Shown: positions 8,105-64,000 of the stretch, one piece after another
Layout of the letters: the number at the start of each line of letters is the position of its first letter
Numbering within the stretch: the first letter of the stretch is position 1
Sequence record: MT939492.1
Reading direction: 5' to 3' (one strand)
DNA: 64,000 nt
Made by a program: the position numbers and the translations under genes
Notes under the pieces: model-generated
Seen by the model: the letters and a program-made list of their open reading frames with translations, nothing else
Databases searched by the model: none
What the model was told of the DNA's origin: nothing

Positions 8105-8135
8105 GGGAGGGGCTTCGGCCCCTCCCCTTATGCCG
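8105..8135 (+). terminator. Stem-loop after tail tube gene
   Basis: GGGAGGGGC-TTCG-GCCCCTCCC 9-bp stem with UUCG loop, followed by CTTATGCCG. Confidence 0.7.
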
Positions 8136-8206
8136 TGATTCCAATTTCTTTCAACCATACATCACCTTACTGCAATACCTTCCGCAAAACCACCCAACGG
8201 AGCATC

Positions 8207-8566: not shown

Positions 8567-8809
8567 ATGGCTTCGCAAATCAATCCCAGCCAGCTGCGAC
8601 TGGTCCGCGTTCTGGATGCGCCTGCTGCACCGATCCATGTTCCCGCCCGCCGTACCACCCCGCGCAAGAACTTCGTTCAGCGCGCCTGGGAGGACGACCC
8701 GGCCGCAGTTGTCGCCGGCGGCATCGTGCTGCTCGGCGTTGGCATCATCGCCGGTGCTCTGATCCACGAGCACTTCTTCGATGAACCCGCCCCGTTCCAC
8801 TACCTGTAA
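8567..8809 (+). CDS. Small single-pass membrane protein
   Basis: 80 aa, AGGAG RBS, TM-like AAVVAGGIVLLGVGIIAGALI. Confidence 0.75.
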   Translation: MASQINPSQLRLVRVLDAPAAPIHVPARRTTPRKNFVQRAWEDDPAAVVAGGIVLLGVGIIAGALIHEHFFDEPAPFHYL

Positions 8810-14448: not shown

Positions 14449-14498
14449 GCTCGCCTACCGTGGTTTCTTAAAGGGGGTGCATAAAATGGGATCGGAAA

Positions 14499-14528
14499 AC
14501 TTTTGAACTCTATATTACCCTAGTGAGC
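14499..14528 (+). promoter_or_regulatory. Early-type phage promoter
   Basis: Exact TATATTAC (14511-14518), the reported phiKZ early consensus, in an AT-rich intergenic gap. Confidence 0.65.
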
Positions 14529-14594
14529 GCATGCCTCAATAACAGGCTCCCGCTCGACACCTTCTTCGCAATTTCACTTATCGAGTAATCCACA

Positions 14595-14756
14595 ATGTTG
14601 AAAACCCTCCTGGCTGTTGCCGGCGTCGTTGCTGTTGGCGCTGTCGCTTACACCCTGATCAATGATGGTCAGGGGAGCGCCGACCATCCGGTCGTCGACG
14701 GGGAGTTGCCGGCTCCGGATACGGGTGGCGAACAGTCCACCGCTCCGGCCATCTGA
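14595..14756 (+). CDS. Small single-pass membrane protein (53 aa)
   Basis: Below ORF-track cutoff; MLKTLLAVAGVVAVGAVAYTLINDGQGSADHPVVDGELPAPDTGGEQSTAPAI; downstream of early-type promoter. Confidence 0.6.
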   Translation: MLKTLLAVAGVVAVGAVAYTLINDGQGSADHPVVDGELPAPDTGGEQSTAPAI

Positions 14757-53672: not shown

Positions 53673-55354
53673 AAAAAAAGTCGTGTCACGTCGAGCGGCA
53701 GCAGGCGCGGATGCTTGGAGCCAGCCACGGTCTGCTCAGCGCCGCAGACACGGCACTCGTAACGCGGAATGGCGACCATCGCAACGGTCACCGAGTCGAT
53801 GAACTTCTGCACGCCTTCGACGAAGCTTTCCACCACGTCCTGACGGCTGGAGATTTCACCCAGCAGCTCCACGAACGATTCACGCACGTCATCGACGTCG
53901 TCCACTTCCGGATCGTAGGTCAGCACACCCGGCACCGCTTCTTCGGTGTTCTTGAAGATGATGCGCTTGACCCAGTGGCTGTACTGGCGAGCAGTGGCCA
54001 TGCGGGACTGAGCGAGGATGTACTGGTCACGCTCCTGGCCGTCCAGGGACGTACCGAAGGCCGCGTCCACGCGCTCTTCGATGGAGTTGATCCAGTCGAA
54101 GGACGACTTCTCGTACAGCTCCACCGTCGGAACGGCGAACTCCACGTACACGTCGTCGGTGATGGCGCACAGCACCGTGCTGGCGTAGGCATGGCCGTTG
54201 ACGTACTCGGCCAGCTCGGCGTCGTTGGTCTTCTGGGTACGGCGAGCCATCAGGCGGCGCTGGTTCTGGCTCAGGGCGCGTCGGTTGACGAACATCAGAC
54301 GCGAGAGGTTCAGCACTTCTTCTTCGATGTGCTGGCACTCGTTGGCGTGGTTGGTGCACGGACGCGCCAGCGGGTAGCCGTTCGGGTTGTTGATCAGACC
54401 CAGCTGCAGCATCAGCAGCGGGATATCGGTGATCAGCATCTTCTGCTTGACCACGGCCGGGCTGATGTCCTTCAGCGTGCTGTCGTACATCTTGCTGATG
54501 GCGAAGTTCACCACCGTCAGCTGATGGTAGACGTTGTTGGCCGAGAAGGCCAAGCCGCCGGAGACGCGGCCCAGGGTGATCTTGCTGTTGCCCAGCTGCT
54601 GTTCCAGTTCCAGCATCTCGCCTTCACCGGGCGCCTGCAGGGACACCCAGAAGCCGGAGTGCCACATCGGAGCCTGCGCCAGCGAACCCACGCCCAGGCG
54701 CGCCTTCAGGCGGCTCTTGGCTTCTTCACCGGAGACACGGCCGTTGGTGCTGGAGTTGCCGCCGGTAGCCACCGGGCGGCCGATCATCATTTCTTCGCCG
54801 TTGTAGTCGACCGTCTGCTGCCAGTCGGAACCTTCGACACCCAGAGCACGCTGACCGTAGTTGCCAGTGGGCATCAGGCGCGAACCACGCGCAGCACCTT
54901 CCAGCCAGCGGATGACTTCCGGAGTGGCGGTGAGGTTGAGGTTGTTCAGGCTTTCGCCGACCGGCGCGAACTCTTCAGCGGTCTGGTTCAGGGTCCACAG
55001 ATGGAAACCCTTCGTCACGTCCTGCTTCTCGGCTTCGGTGGTCAGCGGCCGGGTCAGCGGCCGGGTCAGGGTGACGGTCTTGCTCGGTTCGGTCGGCTCG
55101 GAGCGCTTGAGGTGCACACGACGCGAGGCGTCGGCGGCCAGCGTACGTTCACGCTTGGCGATGGGGCTTTCACCACCAACCTCGGCAGCCACCTGCTCGA
55201 TATCGGTGTACGGATCCTGAACCAGCGTTTCGACCGGCGTACCGTTGGTGTTGACGAACTCACGCGGATCATCGGCTACCTGAACCGGCGTCGCTTCGAC
55301 CGGGGTTTCAGCCGGCGGGGTTTCCTGGATGTTCTCGTTGGGATCCTGCGTCAC
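53621..55354 (-). CDS. Conserved tail/baseplate assembly chaperone-like protein (T4 gp26-like, tentative)
   Basis: 577 aa; Cys pairs (PCTN...ECQH; YECRVCG), acidic disordered N-terminus, GGAG RBS. Confidence 0.6.
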   Translation of the reverse strand: MTQDPNENIQETPPAETPVEATPVQVADDPREFVNTNGTPVETLVQDPYTDIEQVAAEVGGESPIAKRERTLAADASRRVHLKRSEPTEPSKTVTLTRPLTRPLTTEAEKQDVTKGFHLWTLNQTAEEFAPVGESLNNLNLTATPEVIRWLEGAARGSRLMPTGNYGQRALGVEGSDWQQTVDYNGEEMMIGRPVATGGNSSTNGRVSGEEAKSRLKARLGVGSLAQAPMWHSGFWVSLQAPGEGEMLELEQQLGNSKITLGRVSGGLAFSANNVYHQLTVVNFAISKMYDSTLKDISPAVVKQKMLITDIPLLMLQLGLINNPNGYPLARPCTNHANECQHIEEEVLNLSRLMFVNRRALSQNQRRLMARRTQKTNDAELAEYVNGHAYASTVLCAITDDVYVEFAVPTVELYEKSSFDWINSIEERVDAAFGTSLDGQERDQYILAQSRMATARQYSHWVKRIIFKNTEEAVPGVLTYDPEVDDVDDVRESFVELLGEISSRQDVVESFVEGVQKFIDSVTVAMVAIPRYECRVCGAEQTVAGSKHPRLLPLDVTRLFFTLLGQRTAKAISASVM

Positions 55355-59096: not shown

Positions 59097-59299
59097 GGGG
59101 CCTTATAGACTGCCTAGGAGGACTTCGGTTCTCCTAGGCAGCTATGCCCCTTATGCCCTATTCAAAAACCTTTCAACCCTATAACACCTAGCTGAGGTCT
59201 CAACTAAGACAAAGACCTTACTTCGCGGCATAAAGCCCGGGGCGCTCGCAACGCCCCGGGCTGTACTGCCTTTTCTACCATTCGACACAAGGAGACTTT

Positions 59300-59428: not shown

Positions 59429-59500
59429 CTCCTTCCATAATATCGTCTAGGGGGTATTTATTTGCCCCCTATTCTAACCCCTGAAAAGTCGATTCCAATA

Positions 59501-59530
59501 ACTTTCAGTTCTATATAACTCAGGTGAAGT
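59501..59530 (+). promoter_or_regulatory. Early-type promoter
   Basis: AGTTCTATATAACTCAGGTGAAGT, repeated exactly at 62290-62313; core TATATAAC is one base off phiKZ early TATATTAC. Confidence 0.75.
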
Positions 59531-59582
59531 GCAACATCAATCTAATCAATCCTTCCTGTAATACCCTCAAAGGAGTTCTACC

Positions 59583-59789
59583 ATGAGCAACAACCTGAAG
59601 CTGGCTGGCGAAATCGCTCTCGTTACCCTGGCCATTGGTGCCGGCGCCTACTGCCTGCACCTGGAAAACAAGCGCCGCAAGATGCGCATCAACAGCACTG
59701 AGTTCCAGGCTCTCAAGAGCGTGGCCATGCTGAACGCCAATGCTCGCGCCAACGCCAAGACCACGGCCAAGAAGAAGAAGGTCGCTTAA
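59583..59789 (+). CDS. Membrane microprotein with Lys-rich tail
   Basis: 68 aa, AAAGGAG RBS. Confidence 0.8.
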   Translation: MSNNLKLAGEIALVTLAIGAGAYCLHLENKRRKMRINSTEFQALKSVAMLNANARANAKTTAKKKKVA

Positions 59790-59816
59790 TCCCCTCCATC
59801 GTCAAGGAATAGAATC

Positions 59817-59993
59817 ATGGAAATCAGTGACAACGTGGTGAAGCTGATCGTTGCAGGAACTGTCGTTGCTGCAGCTGGCGTCGGCTATGTCGCCTACAAG
59901 AAGGGTCGCAAGGATGGCGTGTTCCTCGGAGCCATCATCGACCTGGGCTTGTGCGACGACAAGCTGAAGAAGAAATCCACCAAGGCAAAGTAA
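59817..59993 (+). CDS. Membrane microprotein with Lys-rich tail (58 aa)
   Basis: Below ORF-track cutoff; AAGGA RBS; MEISDNVVKLIVAGTVVAAAGVGYVAYKKGRKDG...KLKKKSTKAK. Confidence 0.75.
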   Translation: MEISDNVVKLIVAGTVVAAAGVGYVAYKKGRKDGVFLGAIIDLGLCDDKLKKKSTKAK

Positions 59994-60003
59994 GGACACG
60001 ACC

Positions 60004-60198
60004 ATGTACATCGAAAAAGAAGATGCAATCATCGGCGGTATCGCCCTGGCAATTGTGGTAGGTTCCGTTGGAGCTGCCATGTACTTCGAGGGCAAGGCTC
60101 GTGGTCTGAGCGCCCATGGTCCCGTTAAGGCAATGGCTGCTGACATGCGCAAGGTCATCGCCACCGACAAGAAGAAGGTCAAACAGGCCAAGCGTTAA
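60004..60198 (+). CDS. Membrane microprotein with Lys-rich tail
   Basis: 64 aa, AAGGA RBS. Confidence 0.8.
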   Translation: MYIEKEDAIIGGIALAIVVGSVGAAMYFEGKARGLSAHGPVKAMAADMRKVIATDKKKVKQAKR

Positions 60199-60284
60199 AA
60201 GTTTCACTCAGCCCCTTCCACAGAGCTGTCCCCTGTAGTACAATTACCCCACACCTTCCGCAACAACCTCAAAGGAGCTTCACC

Positions 60285-60509
60285 ATGTTCAAGAACATCA
60301 TCTTCTTCGCCTTCCTCGGTCTGATCCTGGGCGGCACCGCTTTCACCATCGCCGATCAGGCCCTGGCTCACGAGACCAGCACCTGCGGCAAGAACATCAC
60401 CCTGGCGTCCAAGCTGACCCGCGACAACACCCTGCACTGCAGCGTCAAGTCGGTCGGCTATTTCACCGGTAGCGTCAAGTACCGCATCGAGTTCCCCGAG
60501 CAGCAGTAA
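60285..60509 (+). CDS. Small secreted/membrane-anchored protein
   Basis: 74 aa, signal-peptide-like N-terminus, two Cys, AAAGGAG RBS. Confidence 0.75.
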   Translation: MFKNIIFFAFLGLILGGTAFTIADQALAHETSTCGKNITLASKLTRDNTLHCSVKSVGYFTGSVKYRIEFPEQQ

Positions 60510-60600
60510 TACCGATAGCCTACCGAGAGCCTCCTAACGGGGGTTCTCGGTAGTATGCCTTCGGTGACTTGTTCTTTTAGCCAACGAAGAGGTAACAACG

Positions 60601-61002
60601 ATGAGTCTCGTACCAACGATCGAACAAGTGCACATGGAACAGGTCGCCAAGTGTGGCCGCGTGTTCCACCACGCAGCAAGTAAGATCGGCTGTGACGTGA
60701 TGCGTCGTATTGCTGATCTGTTGTCTGACCCGGACAGGCTGCCCAACTACTACAAGAAGCCCAACTACACCAACCAAGGTGAAGACTACAAGCCGGAGAT
60801 TGAAATCAAGCTCCCGCTGTTCCTGGGCTATGACCTGCTTGAAACCATCGACCACTCCCACCAGCTCATGATCCAAAGTGAACTGGAGCGGGCGCTGGTT
60901 GATGTAGCTTCTTCCATCCGCCTGCAAATGGAGCGCTTCACCTACGTGGGTGCTGATCGCTCCGACAAGCTCACCATCGTCCTCCGCGGCGAACTGATTT
61001 AA
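60601..61002 (+). CDS. Hypothetical protein
   Basis: 133 aa, GAGG RBS. Confidence 0.7.
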   Translation: MSLVPTIEQVHMEQVAKCGRVFHHAASKIGCDVMRRIADLLSDPDRLPNYYKKPNYTNQGEDYKPEIEIKLPLFLGYDLLETIDHSHQLMIQSELERALVDVASSIRLQMERFTYVGADRSDKLTIVLRGELI

Positions 61003-61030
61003 ATCCCTCAACTACCCAAAGGTAACTGCA

Positions 61031-61402
61031 ATGATCACTGTCAACACCTCCAAGCTCGCCACCGCCATGACCGACAACCAGAAGGCAGTCGCCAACACGG
61101 TCGTCTCCTCCATCGCCACCGCGCTGAACGACGCTGAACTGATCGAACGTTTCAGCCGCACAACCAAGACGAACATCCGCGTGGATATCCCGCTGTCGGA
61201 AATGCTCAGCTACGAGCTGTACCACTCGCTGGACTACCGCACCAAGTACGAGGTCGAGCGTCAGCTGAGCGAGAAGATCCAGAACGCCTCCAACGTGGTG
61301 TTCAACTACAAGATCGGCGAGAAGTTCGAAAGCGCTGCTCAGTACGAGGCTGACTGCCTGGACTGCCTCACCTTCACCCTCGATCTGAACACCCTGGGCT
61401 AA
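61031..61402 (+). CDS. Hypothetical protein
   Basis: 123 aa, strong codon bias. Confidence 0.75.
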   Translation: MITVNTSKLATAMTDNQKAVANTVVSSIATALNDAELIERFSRTTKTNIRVDIPLSEMLSYELYHSLDYRTKYEVERQLSEKIQNASNVVFNYKIGEKFESAAQYEADCLDCLTFTLDLNTLG

Positions 61403-61465
61403 TCCCCAGGGCTTCACCCCCCCCCCACTCATCAACCTTCCGTATCCAAGTAAAGGAGCAACACC

Positions 61466-61843
61466 ATGAGCAAAGCACTCGACAGCCTGACCGCCTTCAC
61501 CACCGCAAACCTCGCAGCCTGCCATGACCCCAAGCTGCCCGGGAAGGCCATCCCCCAGCTCCGCGCTGAGGCCATGCGTGACATGACCAACGCCATCGAA
61601 GACGTCATGTCCGATCCCCAGCGCATCCACCAGAGCTACGACCCCAACATCGGCTGCCTGCAGGTCACCCAGGCGCTGGACTACTGGGACGCCCACATCG
61701 CCCAGATCATCTCGGCAATGCTGATCAGCGAAGGCGTCGGCGGCACCACGTTCGACGTCATCCCCCGCGACGGCCGCGCCTGCATGGTCACCGCCGTGAT
61801 CCCGATGTTCGACCCGGAGGTCATGGAAGCCGCCGCACGGTAA
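61466..61843 (+). CDS. Hypothetical protein
   Basis: 125 aa, AAAGGAG RBS. Confidence 0.75.
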   Translation: MSKALDSLTAFTTANLAACHDPKLPGKAIPQLRAEAMRDMTNAIEDVMSDPQRIHQSYDPNIGCLQVTQALDYWDAHIAQIISAMLISEGVGGTTFDVIPRDGRACMVTAVIPMFDPEVMEAAAR

Positions 61844-61907
61844 TACCGCATCACCCTCCCCCACTTCGCAACAAACCCTTTTCCACGTTCCGTAGGAGGA
61901 ACACGTC

Positions 61908-62027
61908 ATGATCAAGAATGTCCTCGCTGTCATCGGTGCAGCCGTCGTCCTCAAGCACGCTGTGAAGGTCGGCATCAAGCTCTCCAAGGACTACGCGGAG
62001 CTGGAAGGCTACCGCCGCGTCAAGTAA
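61908..62027 (+). CDS. Hydrophobic microprotein (39 aa)
   Basis: AGGAGG RBS; MIKNVLAVIGAAVVLKHAVKVGIKLSKDYAELEGYRRVK. Confidence 0.65.
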   Translation: MIKNVLAVIGAAVVLKHAVKVGIKLSKDYAELEGYRRVK

Positions 62028-62067
62028 TCCCGCACCACAACTCCCTCAACTACCAAAGGTAATCGAA

Positions 62068-62268
62068 ATGGCTCTGCTCGAAAAGAATGACTACATCGCC
62101 CTGGGCGCCGTCGCTGTTGTGGCTGTCGGTCTGACCTACGTCAACCACCGCATCTCCAAGAGCGTCATCGCTGCACTGAAGTCCCCGGAAGTGCAGGTGA
62201 AGATCGCTGGTGCCAAGCGCAAGCCGGCTGCCAAGAAGCCGCTGAAGAAGGTCGCTACCAAGCGCTGA
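62068..62268 (+). CDS. Membrane microprotein with Lys-rich tail
   Basis: 66 aa, AAAGG RBS. Confidence 0.8.
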   Translation: MALLEKNDYIALGAVAVVAVGLTYVNHRISKSVIAALKSPEVQVKIAGAKRKPAAKKPLKKVATKR

Positions 62269-62284
62269 AAGTCGATCCAAACAA

Positions 62285-62313
62285 ACTTGAGTTCTATATA
62301 ACTCAGGTGAAGT
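62285..62313 (+). promoter_or_regulatory. Early-type promoter (second copy)
   Basis: AGTTCTATATAACTCAGGTGAAGT identical to the copy near 59507. Confidence 0.75.
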
Positions 62314-62373
62314 AGTACCCGCAATACCCCGCAACACTTACCCTTACCCCGCAACTTGCAAAGGAGCTACACC

Positions 62374-62829
62374 ATGAACGCAGTCCTGAACAACACCCAG
62401 AACACCGCCCTGACCACCGCCATGCTGCGCCACATCGCCGCGAAGCTGCCGGTGATCAACTTCAACCCGGAATGGAAAAACGGCACCGGCTACTTCAACG
62501 GCGCCGTCAACGCCGATGTCCAGCACACCGCCGCCTTCGTCGATGACCTCGGCCGAACCGGCATCATCATCCCGCTGGAAGTAGGGGGCAACCTGGTCAT
62601 CTTCGAACGCTTCCCCGATGGCGACCGCATCTGCGCCAACGCCCCGCTGGGCTACAACAAGAAGCTCTTCGACGGTCAGGTCGGCAAGTACCCGACCAAG
62701 AACGAAGACCGCAACAAGGAAGTCGCCACCGACGGCTTCACCCTCGCCACCAATGGCCGCTGGTATGAGCAGGAGGACTTCTCCGACGCTCTGATCTTCG
62801 ACCTCGACACCCTGCTCGCCCTGAGCTAA
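62374..62829 (+). CDS. Hypothetical protein
   Basis: ATG 62374 with AAAGGAG RBS, 151 aa, strong codon bias. Confidence 0.8.
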   Translation: MNAVLNNTQNTALTTAMLRHIAAKLPVINFNPEWKNGTGYFNGAVNADVQHTAAFVDDLGRTGIIIPLEVGGNLVIFERFPDGDRICANAPLGYNKKLFDGQVGKYPTKNEDRNKEVATDGFTLATNGRWYEQEDFSDALIFDLDTLLALS

Positions 62830-62860
62830 CAACCTCTCTCACGTAAAAGGAATCCCGCCC

Positions 62861-63043
62861 ATGTCCCTGGACGAACGCATCGAACGTAACCGTCGTGAAC
62901 TCCTGGCCCACATTGGCGGGAAGTCCGATTACCAGATCCGCGACGAAGCACGCCGCTTCAACGCAGCTCACCAGTACCAGAACGCAACCACTCGCGCACA
63001 GGTCCAGAACCTGTGCAACTCCTCGTACAAGTTCAAGGCCTAA
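62861..63043 (+). CDS. Small hypothetical protein
   Basis: 60 aa, AAAGGA RBS. Confidence 0.7.
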   Translation: MSLDERIERNRRELLAHIGGKSDYQIRDEARRFNAAHQYQNATTRAQVQNLCNSSYKFKA

Positions 63044-63057
63044 AGGAAAGAAGCATC

Positions 63058-63342
63058 ATGGACATGAATCCCACCGATCGCAACGCTCTGATCATCACCG
63101 CTGTCATCGGCGCCGGCCTGGTTGGTCTGGCCTACATGCGCAAGCGCAAGCAGGACAAGGCGATGGCTGCCTTCCACGAAGAAATCCAGAACATCGGCAA
63201 GGTCAAGCTGTCCCCGGCTGCCCAGTTCGCTGCCACCGGCGGCGTCACCAGCCTGGCCAAGTTCCGCGCAGAAAAGCTCAAGGGCAAGAAGACGGCCACC
63301 AAGAAAGCCGTCAAGAAAGCCCCGACCCGCGCGGCGCGCTGA
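63058..63342 (+). CDS. Membrane microprotein with histone-like Lys/Ala tail
   Basis: ATG 63058 with AAAGGA RBS; ends KGKKTATKKAVKKAPTRAAR. Confidence 0.8.
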   Translation: MDMNPTDRNALIITAVIGAGLVGLAYMRKRKQDKAMAAFHEEIQNIGKVKLSPAAQFAATGGVTSLAKFRAEKLKGKKTATKKAVKKAPTRAAR

Positions 63343-63490: not shown

Positions 63491-63943
63491 ATGTTCACCA
63501 ATATCGTCTTCGCTGTCCTGTTCATCTCCTGCGCCTTCAGCACCTTCTTCCTGTGGCAGCTGAAGAACAACAAGCCGCTCAAGAACGACCGCATCAGCCA
63601 GTACATGCGCAGCAACATCACCAAGCTGGCTCACTCGCTGCTGCTGATGGGTCGCGATACCCCGGCCGATCGCAAGGAGTGGGTCGGTCAGTTCAACTTC
63701 GTCTTCGGCATCGCCACGTTCCTGGCCTGCCTGGTCGCAGTGTACTTCGGCAAGATCCACGTCTGCATCCCGCTGGTTGGCCTGTTCGCCCTGACCCGTG
63801 AGTTCAACGCCGAGATGCTGCAGCACGTCGAGTTCGAGATCAAAGTCATGGCCGTCGCTCAGCGCCGCATGAACCGCGACATCATGGACGGCTGCCGCAA
63901 CCTGAACCTGAGCGGCATCACCGACGTCACCGACAAGCTGTAA
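63491..63943 (+). CDS. Hypothetical membrane protein
   Basis: 150 aa, AAGGAG RBS, several hydrophobic segments. Confidence 0.8.
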   Translation: MFTNIVFAVLFISCAFSTFFLWQLKNNKPLKNDRISQYMRSNITKLAHSLLLMGRDTPADRKEWVGQFNFVFGIATFLACLVAVYFGKIHVCIPLVGLFALTREFNAEMLQHVEFEIKVMAVAQRRMNRDIMDGCRNLNLSGITDVTDKL

Positions 63944-63944
63944 G

Positions 63945-64000
63945 CGGCATAGCTGGGCTCCCCGCGAGGGGAGCCCAGTATCCGATCCTCTTTTTTTTTT
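63945..64000 (+). terminator. Intrinsic terminator
   Basis: CTGGGCTCCCC-GCGA-GGGGAGCCCAG stem preceded by GGCATA, T-run at window end. Confidence 0.75.

Follow-up and report, generated by a model that had tools for sequence, protein, structure and literature searches.

Why would a nucleus-forming jumbo phage keep five very small genes, each encoding a predicted membrane anchor and a lysine-rich tail, within 3.8 kb of its genome? The genes are gp239, gp240, gp241, gp247 and gp250 of Xanthomonas phage Xoo-sp14 (MT939492.1; 232,104 bp, 58% G+C), the subject of a genome announcement (PMC7686423). They lie in the stretch of 64,000 nucleotides analysed here (the window), which is identical in sequence to positions 168105-232104 of the record, its last 64 kb. 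Xoo-sp14 encodes a chimallin or nuclear-shell protein (gp210; PHROG 4795, E = 2e-79) and homologues of the phiKZ virion and non-virion RNA polymerase subunits, which together mark it as a nucleus-forming jumbo phage. As no other chimallin among 50,697 phage records exceeds 28.5% identity to its own, the phage represents a deep, poorly sampled branch. A first-pass annotation of the window had read the five genes as a family of early membrane microproteins with histone-like tails, which could tether the injected genome to the early phage infection (EPI) vesicle, remodel that vesicle, or act in superinfection exclusion. The analysis below leads to a different emphasis: on balance, the five are probably lineage-specific early accessory proteins of the inner membrane, acting in host takeover, exclusion or membrane conditioning, and not core nucleus-forming machinery.

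Architecture, conservation and relatedness

Orthologues of the five proteins come from four related genomes, all metagenomic, namely L006 and L005 from IMG/VR and L011 and L012 from Logan assemblies; L005 and L019, the latter from a JGI metagenome, are one phage. The ratio of nonsynonymous to synonymous substitution rates (dN/dS) refers throughout to pairwise comparison with the window copy.

59583 to 59789, plus strand: gp239, 68 aa, N-terminal predicted transmembrane (TM) segment and Lys-rich tail; orthologues in L011 and L006; dN/dS 0.20-0.40
59817 to 59993, plus strand: gp240, 58 aa, N-terminal predicted TM segment and Lys-rich tail; orthologues in L011, L012 and L005; dN/dS 0.11-0.19
60004 to 60198, plus strand: gp241, 64 aa, N-terminal predicted TM segment and Lys-rich tail; orthologues in L011, L012 and L005; dN/dS 0.11-0.34
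62068 to 62268, plus strand: gp247, 66 aa, N-terminal predicted TM segment and Lys/Ala/Pro-rich tail; paralogue of gp250
63058 to 63342, plus strand: gp250, 94 aa, N-terminal predicted TM segment, conserved middle helices and disordered Lys-rich tail

The five open reading frames (ORFs) are real genes under purifying selection. Their dN/dS values range from 0.11 to 0.58, against about 1 for the neighbours gp244 and gp245, and their third-position G+C content (0.62-0.84) is of the coding type. Several had been thought to fall below gene-calling cutoffs; in fact all five are annotated in MT939492.1 as hypothetical proteins, as are the two further ORFs that had been grouped with them, at 61908 (gp246) and 14595 (gp193), and the five were also called independently in metagenome assemblies. 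The coordinates and lengths first given for them (68, 58, 64, 66 and 94 aa) are correct, every helix and tail string quoted was found, and good ribosome-binding sites precede 5/5 ORFs.

The shared design is equally present in 5/5 ORFs. An N-terminus of 6-10 aa with a net charge of 0 to -2 leads into an uncharged, Gly/Ala/Val-rich hydrophobic segment of 15-21 aa (17-residue Kyte-Doolittle mean 1.9-2.3), which is closed by a Tyr and followed by a basic flank of +2 to +3 and a Lys-rich tail, the last 20 residues carrying a net charge of +3 to +9. In gp239-gp241 the tails are short Lys clusters with 4-6 Lys. The hydrophobic segment is kept in all orthologues, and every orthologue retains the charge pattern (N-terminus 0 to -2, the 15 residues after the TM segment +1 to +4, whole protein +5 to +14). 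The Tyr-ended helix described earlier holds for all five window proteins, but the terminal Tyr is not conserved among gp250 orthologues. An AlphaFold2 model of gp250, built on a shallow gp250/gp247 alignment, contains one long helix over residues 5-46 and a disordered tail over residues 77-94; the predicted local distance difference test score (pLDDT) is about 80-89 over residues 1-30, below 50 in the tail and 60 on average. By these hallmarks the five are predicted to be single-pass membrane proteins. Under the positive-inside rule, their charge asymmetry further predicts an N-out/C-in topology, with the N-terminus translocated and the tail cytoplasmic.

A census of all six reading frames sought ORFs of 40-120 aa that combine a single N-terminal hydrophobic segment with Lys-rich last 20 residues; across the 232-kb genome it returned exactly these five, all inside 3.8 kb, and no spurious ORF. 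Further, in a codon-composition-filtered set of 244 genes, a Lys-rich tail goes with an N-terminal TM segment among proteins of at most 120 aa (6/14 vs 1/38, Fisher p = 9e-4).

Conservation is distributed unevenly within the proteins. Invariant positions make up 44-87% of the TM and juxtamembrane parts and 30-70% of the tails, which score lowest in gp239 and gp241. The former parts are better conserved than the tail in four of the proteins (gp239 and gp241 most clearly, gp240 and gp247 as well), while in gp250 the three parts are conserved about equally. Each orthogroup has its own invariant juxtamembrane motif, and in all orthogroups the tail keeps its net charge of +3 to +9 while its sequence drifts.

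Gene content varies as well. Whereas gp247 and gp250 are present in all relatives, together with gp246 and gp242, the region directly behind the conserved promoter (59583-60198) is polymorphic: Xoo-sp14 and L011 carry gp239, gp240 and gp241, L006 carries gp239 only, and L005/L019 and L012 carry gp240 and gp241 only. These three genes are dispensable modules. Because either gp239 or gp240 and gp241 are missing in close relatives, they are accessory and not part of a core EPI-vesicle machinery.

The five had been called a family, and this claim was examined by profile-profile comparison of orthogroup alignments, calibrated with segment-wise column shuffles. In hhalign, gp247 and gp250 match with a probability of 91%, E ~1e-6 and z = 6.1 (90.5% and E = 1.4e-6 in a repeat run), and they can be aligned collinearly over their whole length, tail included, with gp250 carrying two insertions. 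The gp239-gp241 pair is marginal (z = 3.7, probability 11%), and the other eight pairs do not exceed z = 2.0. Similarly, pairwise Smith-Waterman local alignments fall to background level when N-terminus, TM segment and remainder are shuffled separately. Homology of gp247 and gp250 thus survives from the original claim, and a single paralogous family of all five was rejected, since only this pair exceeds the background of composition and architecture. Judged by these comparisons, the five are one paralogue pair and three proteins sharing its design, and that design may reflect eroded common ancestry or convergence.

The same results bear on the best-surviving alternative, in which there is no common entity at all: five unrelated small membrane proteins would resemble each other through the generic positive-inside rule and a Lys-rich composition, and would be clustered simply as accessory early genes. 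The Smith-Waterman scores, the eight of ten profile pairs without significance and the different juxtamembrane motif of each orthogroup fit this well. It accounts poorly for the end-to-end alignment of gp247 with gp250 at a significant profile score, for the z of 3.7 between gp239 and gp241, for the confinement of all Lys-tailed N-terminal-TM ORFs of the genome to one 3.8-kb stretch, and for tail charge that outlasts tail sequence. We therefore regard it as rather unlikely.

Relatives outside the lineage were sought broadly. Word-seeded searches with gp247, gp250 and gp240 in 5.8 billion proteins found close orthologues only. A HMMER search with a joint gp247 and gp250 profile against 1.84 billion representatives returned their own two clusters and three spurious matches to long proteins, spread over multiple stretches and evidently compositional. 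With gp239 and gp241, tblastn against the 50,697 phage records found the window itself only. No significant match emerged from Pfam, PHROG and PADLOC scans that covered all the small proteins and their neighbours, and a PDB sequence search with the gp247/gp250 profile gave no relative at E <= 10. The tails had been described as histone-like, a resemblance that proved compositional only, without a linker-histone or other Pfam match (E <= 1, beyond noise). Across Chimalliviridae, no homologues were found in the other nucleus-forming phages searched. In phiKZ, an AT-rich genome in which Lys-rich tails arise more easily, a census for the same design gave one annotated ORF (PHIKZ230.1) and no cluster. 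On the evidence of these searches, the five proteins are specific to the Xoo-sp14 lineage.

Transcription signals and genomic setting

Early-type promoters had been claimed upstream of the genes, and a motif that fits this description lies in front of gp239 and gp248. Scores are from a position weight matrix (PWM).

59480 to 59533, plus strand: early-type promoter P(gp239), core 59512-59519, predicted start G 59526; PWM 46.3, top of 17 sites
62263 to 62316, plus strand: early-type promoter P(gp248), core 62295-62302, predicted start G 62309; PWM 43.2; right behind the gp247 stop
63944 to 64000, both directions: bidirectional terminator common to the cluster and gp1, spanning the record ends

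The motif of about 50 bp occurs in about 17 genomic copies, all on the plus strand and intergenic. P(gp239) and P(gp248) are among the four best, and the P(gp239) motif is invariant over its 54 bp (~60 bp) in five relatives. The same motif stands 5' of chimallin gp210 and of the operons with all five homologues of the phiKZ non-virion RNA polymerase subunits (gp211, gp223, gp227, gp228 and gp123). The chimallin and non-virion polymerase genes of phiKZ belong to the early class, that of chimallin with the early motif (PMC8244752, PMC10914365, PMC12908238). Because such operons need the injected virion polymerase, and because the layout fits the published early promoters of this enzyme (PMC5312081, PMC8244752), the motif is taken as the early class and is probably the early (virion RNA polymerase) promoter of the Xoo-sp14 lineage. 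Like the phiKZ promoters it has an AT-rich core, six bases to a G start and a T-rich upstream element; unlike them it is about 50 bp long, with a sequence specific to this GC-rich lineage. By this analogy, the five genes are probably expressed early.

The phage also has a terminator class of its own, comprising about 60 GC-rich tetraloop hairpins genome-wide, each followed by YTWTGCC and often arranged as back-to-back bidirectional pairs. It resembles the phiKZ terminators, in which a hairpin is followed by TTAT (PMC10914365). No terminator of this class lies between 59262 and 63944, so the cluster probably consists of two overlapping early transcription units that end at the bidirectional terminator. 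Scans for generic sigma-70 promoters and U-tract terminators stayed at shuffle level, and an Rfam scan of 58.9-64 kb found nothing. Xoo-sp14 uses promoter and terminator signals of its own.

The genes gp239-gp251 form a plus-strand block of 13 annotated genes between the late virion gene gp238 and the convergent DNA polymerase gene gp1; the accessory cluster in this position comprises 13-14 genes. The left neighbour of gp238, gp237, is a homologue of the phiKZ gp80 virion RNA polymerase subunit. Gene order 3' of the gp238 homologue is not kept in the nearest database phages (RP12, Moabite). The record is linearised between gp251 and gp1 (L007:14-1759), so that the gp1 terminator sits at its right end (window 63944-63977), and in L006 and L012 the cluster leads directly into the convergent DNA polymerase gene. 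As the record ends are arbitrary, the terminal position of the cluster says nothing about the order of entry into the host.

Possible roles

The accessory-protein reading is favoured because each orthogroup has its own juxtamembrane motif, tails are conserved in charge only, gene content varies, and the genes are absent from other nucleus-forming phages. In the corresponding mechanism, the injected virion RNA polymerase would transcribe the cluster, starting at its two strong early promoters, and the mRNAs would be translated in the cytoplasm. The peptides would then insert into the host inner membrane or a membrane derived from it, sending the short acidic or neutral N-terminus across and leaving both the basic flank and the Lys-rich tail in the cytoplasm. 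The orthogroup-specific TM/juxtamembrane motif would most likely dock onto a putative host or phage partner close to the membrane. The tail would most likely determine topology and make generic electrostatic contact with anionic lipid head groups, or with RNA or ribosomes.

Small single-pass inner-membrane proteins of bacteria and phages, of the YohP, AcrZ and MgtS type, offer a comparison for this mode of action. They too are shorter than 100 aa, with one TM segment and no enzymatic domain (PMC12648545; PMC7549839). Their orientation is set by flanking positive charges (PMC12648545; insertion: PMC7549839) and, where their action is known, they bind larger membrane proteins or alter membrane energetics (PMC12648545). 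The Xoo-sp14 proteins have no sequence relationship to them, carry longer Lys-rich disordered tails and are clustered in an early operon of a nucleus-forming jumbo phage.

Several points weigh against assigning the five to early accessory membrane proteins. The census criteria were drawn up after the five had been seen. As TM helices, Gly/Ala-rich hydrophobic stretches of 15-18 residues would be among the shorter and weaker ones. The promoter is placed in its temporal class by analogy with phiKZ, and TM proteins are not significantly enriched as the first gene after the motif (6/17 vs 40/227, p = 0.10). Finally, the soluble neighbours in the cluster have no family match and provide no functional context.

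Superinfection exclusion, or blocking of injection, by small early inner-membrane proteins is a more specific possibility. Proteins of this kind are well established in phages, T-even phages among them. The T-even examples and the Xoo-sp14 proteins are alike in being small and accessory and, as far as can be predicted for the latter, early and located in the inner membrane; the early-type promoters, variable gene content and lineage restriction of the cluster all suit this role. The two groups are not homologous, however, and differ in the number of TM segments. PHROG, Pfam and PADLOC comparisons gave no similarity to known exclusion proteins, five different proteins exceed the known systems, and no sequence feature points specifically to exclusion. 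As the role of the five proteins, we think it unlikely.

Genome tethering, in which nucleic-acid-binding, histone-like tails would hold the injected genome to the EPI vesicle or organise the vesicle, shares the early-promoter association. It draws further support from vesicles that are probably derived from the inner membrane and bear polysomes on their surface (10.1101/2023.09.20.558163), from the Lys/Ala/Pro-rich, disordered tails of gp247 and gp250, and from additional genes elsewhere that combine the early motif with a predicted membrane anchor. They are listed here with a further motif-driven gene, gp12.

L007:39074-39280: gp50, 68 aa, basic N-terminal half, C-terminal predicted TM segment, early motif upstream
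L008:31749-33212: gp115, 487 aa, Lys/Ala/Pro-rich N-terminus, C-terminal predicted TM segment, early motif upstream
8567 to 8809, plus strand: gp186, 80 aa, mirror design with an Arg/Lys-containing N-terminal part and a predicted TM segment at residues 46-62; behind a weak motif copy
L007:14823-15209: gp12, C-terminal Gly/Ala-rich hydrophobic segment, early motif upstream

None of these four has a PHROG match. In gp50, gp115 and gp186 the anchor is accompanied, in mirror orientation to the five ORFs, by a Lys/Arg-rich segment predicted to be cytoplasmic, and the theme of a membrane anchor, a polybasic cytoplasmic end and an early promoter is thus wider than the five ORFs.

The predicted topology is a difficulty for tethering. 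In chimalliviruses, the EPI vesicle at first holds the phage DNA in its lumen, and the protein nucleus with its chimallin shell encloses it later (PMC12908238; 10.1101/2023.09.20.558163). Cytoplasmic tails would therefore meet lipid head groups, RNA, ribosomes or host DNA, and not the injected genome. A role in the vesicle known for this family of phages also sits poorly with genes that are absent from all other Chimalliviridae searched, phiKZ having one matching ORF and no cluster, and of which gp239 or gp240 and gp241 are dispensable even among close relatives. Further, no histone or DNA-binding family is matched, and the gp239-gp241 tails contain only 4-6 Lys.

Two known systems resemble the proteins in part. 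The tails of gp247 and gp250 and the N-terminus of gp115 are Lys/Ala/Pro/Thr-rich and predicted to be disordered, as in histone H1 or AlgP-like tails, but they have no domain match and no repeats, the tails are just 13-20 residues long, and those of gp239-gp241 are short Lys clusters. In major coat proteins of Inoviridae, the acidic N-terminus lies outside, a single TM helix follows, and the basic C-terminus contacts DNA on the cytoplasmic side. This is the same three-part design and the clearest phage precedent for a membrane-anchored, DNA-contacting Lys tail. No coat family is matched in Pfam or PHROG at E <= 1, however; the Xoo-sp14 proteins are predicted to be early and not structural, and the DNA of this tailed phage is never free at the inner membrane. 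Overall, we regard the tethering reading as very unlikely.

A variant would keep the vesicle and reverse the side. The peptides would be made on polysomes at the vesicle surface and inserted into the vesicle membrane, with N-termini in the lumen and tails in the cytoplasm, where together with gp50, gp115 and gp186 they would form a polycationic face. If true, this face would hold ribosomes or early mRNA that has been exported, or would serve at hand-over as the receiving site for the genome and the nascent chimallin shell, and the five would be the first phage-encoded membrane components of the EPI vesicle. We consider it a long shot.

Least probable of all is a part in lysis, as a holin, antiholin, pinholin, spanin component or inhibitor of the single-gene-lysis type: small size, one predicted TM segment, a charged C-terminus and a weak match of gp239 to an Rz-like spanin PHROG (E = 0.068) speak for it, but this match is not significant, the genes stand behind early-type promoters, the annotated genes for lysozyme and cell-wall hydrolase are some 170 kb distant (57-61 kb of the record), and the predicted orientation is opposite to that of an inner-membrane spanin.

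For the early accessory proteins favoured here, the interest of the cluster lies in the stage at which they would act. No phage-encoded membrane protein has so far been assigned to the early membrane-bound stage of infection by nucleus-forming phages, and the field has yet to explain the formation of the EPI vesicle, its exchange of molecules and its hand-over of the genome (PMC12908238). The cluster provides sequence-defined candidates in one lineage that are strongly promoted, probably early, and predicted to be membrane-anchored with polybasic cytoplasmic tails. Being lineage-restricted and partly dispensable, these genes are more likely to be host-specific accessories than parts of a general mechanism. 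In addition, the probable early-promoter and terminator signatures of this deep-branching chimallivirus can be used for annotating its temporal programme.

Neighbouring genes and the gp238-gp239 spacer

The remaining genes of the cluster, and the gene gp193 that had been grouped with the five, are as follows.

14479 to 14756, plus strand: early-type promoter and gp193; motif 14479-14532, core 14511-14518; gp193 (14595-14756), 53 aa, N-terminal predicted TM segment and acidic C-terminus, the opposite charge pattern
60285 to 60509, plus strand: gp242, 74 aa, signal-peptide-like N-terminus, no basic tail; same operon
60601 to 61843, plus strand: gp243-gp245, three soluble proteins of 122-133 aa, no family match, fast-evolving
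61908 to 62027, plus strand: gp246, 39 aa, short hydrophobic N-terminus and basic remainder
62374 to 63043, plus strand: gp248 (151 aa) and gp249 (60 aa), soluble, no family match
63491 to 63943, plus strand: gp251, 150 aa multi-pass membrane protein, the last gene of the cluster

Both gp246 and gp193 had been described as having similar helices without the basic tail. This fits gp193, with its N-terminal TM segment and acidic C-terminus, but not gp246, in which the hydrophobic stretch is just 11-15 aa and the C-terminal half is basic (+3 to +5). The latter is the most conserved gene of the cluster, with 90-100% identity in all relatives and a dN/dS of 0-0.11, and always lies 40 nt 5' of gp247. 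Paralogy of gp243, gp244, gp245 and gp248, suggested by uncorrected tblastn, vanished with composition-based statistics. For gp243 (60601-61002), the GenBank start at 60634 gives 122 aa, whereas in the relatives the gene is called from an upstream ATG (equivalent to 60601), giving 133 aa.

The 486-bp spacer after gp238 is 87% identical across relatives, which is above most coding sequence, and contains several further elements.

59110 to 59148, plus strand: terminator after gp238, a 14-bp GC hairpin with TTCG loop and the tail CTATGCC; invariant in five relatives
59148 to 59201, plus strand: weaker copy of the early-promoter motif, core 59180-59187, predicted start G 59194; PWM 39.3; conserved in relatives
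59227 to 59261, minus strand: hairpin (59235-59261) with terminator-type tail; compensatory stem changes in L012 and L005
59300 to 59428, plus strand: unannotated, very basic 42-aa ORF without TM segment; good ribosome-binding site; behind the weak motif copy
59448 to 59471, plus strand: conserved hairpin between the 42-aa ORF and the main promoter

The minus-strand hairpin lies about 35 nt past the predicted start of the weak promoter, and all nearby genes run in the plus direction. It might serve as an attenuator or insulator, or mark where a short RNA ends. The 42-aa ORF has the same length in five relatives and aligns without gaps, its variable columns are distributed 17/12/26 over the codon positions, and its dN/dS is 0.37-0.57 in frame against 0.6-2.6 in shifted frames. 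It is the sole microprotein here truly missed by annotation. Elsewhere in the genome, a 91-aa ORF with a predicted N-terminal TM segment at L008:4212-4487 (record 54212-54487) is also unannotated; it shares a few bases with the start of gp73.

Further examples of the terminator class are found in the window at 8128, 12735/12766, 18473, 20390, 26594/26624, 32820, 44347/44376 and 53119, besides those at 59142 and 63952. Weaker copies of the early-promoter motif lie near 8130-8200, 27889, 39771 and 44766, with additional sites outside the window.

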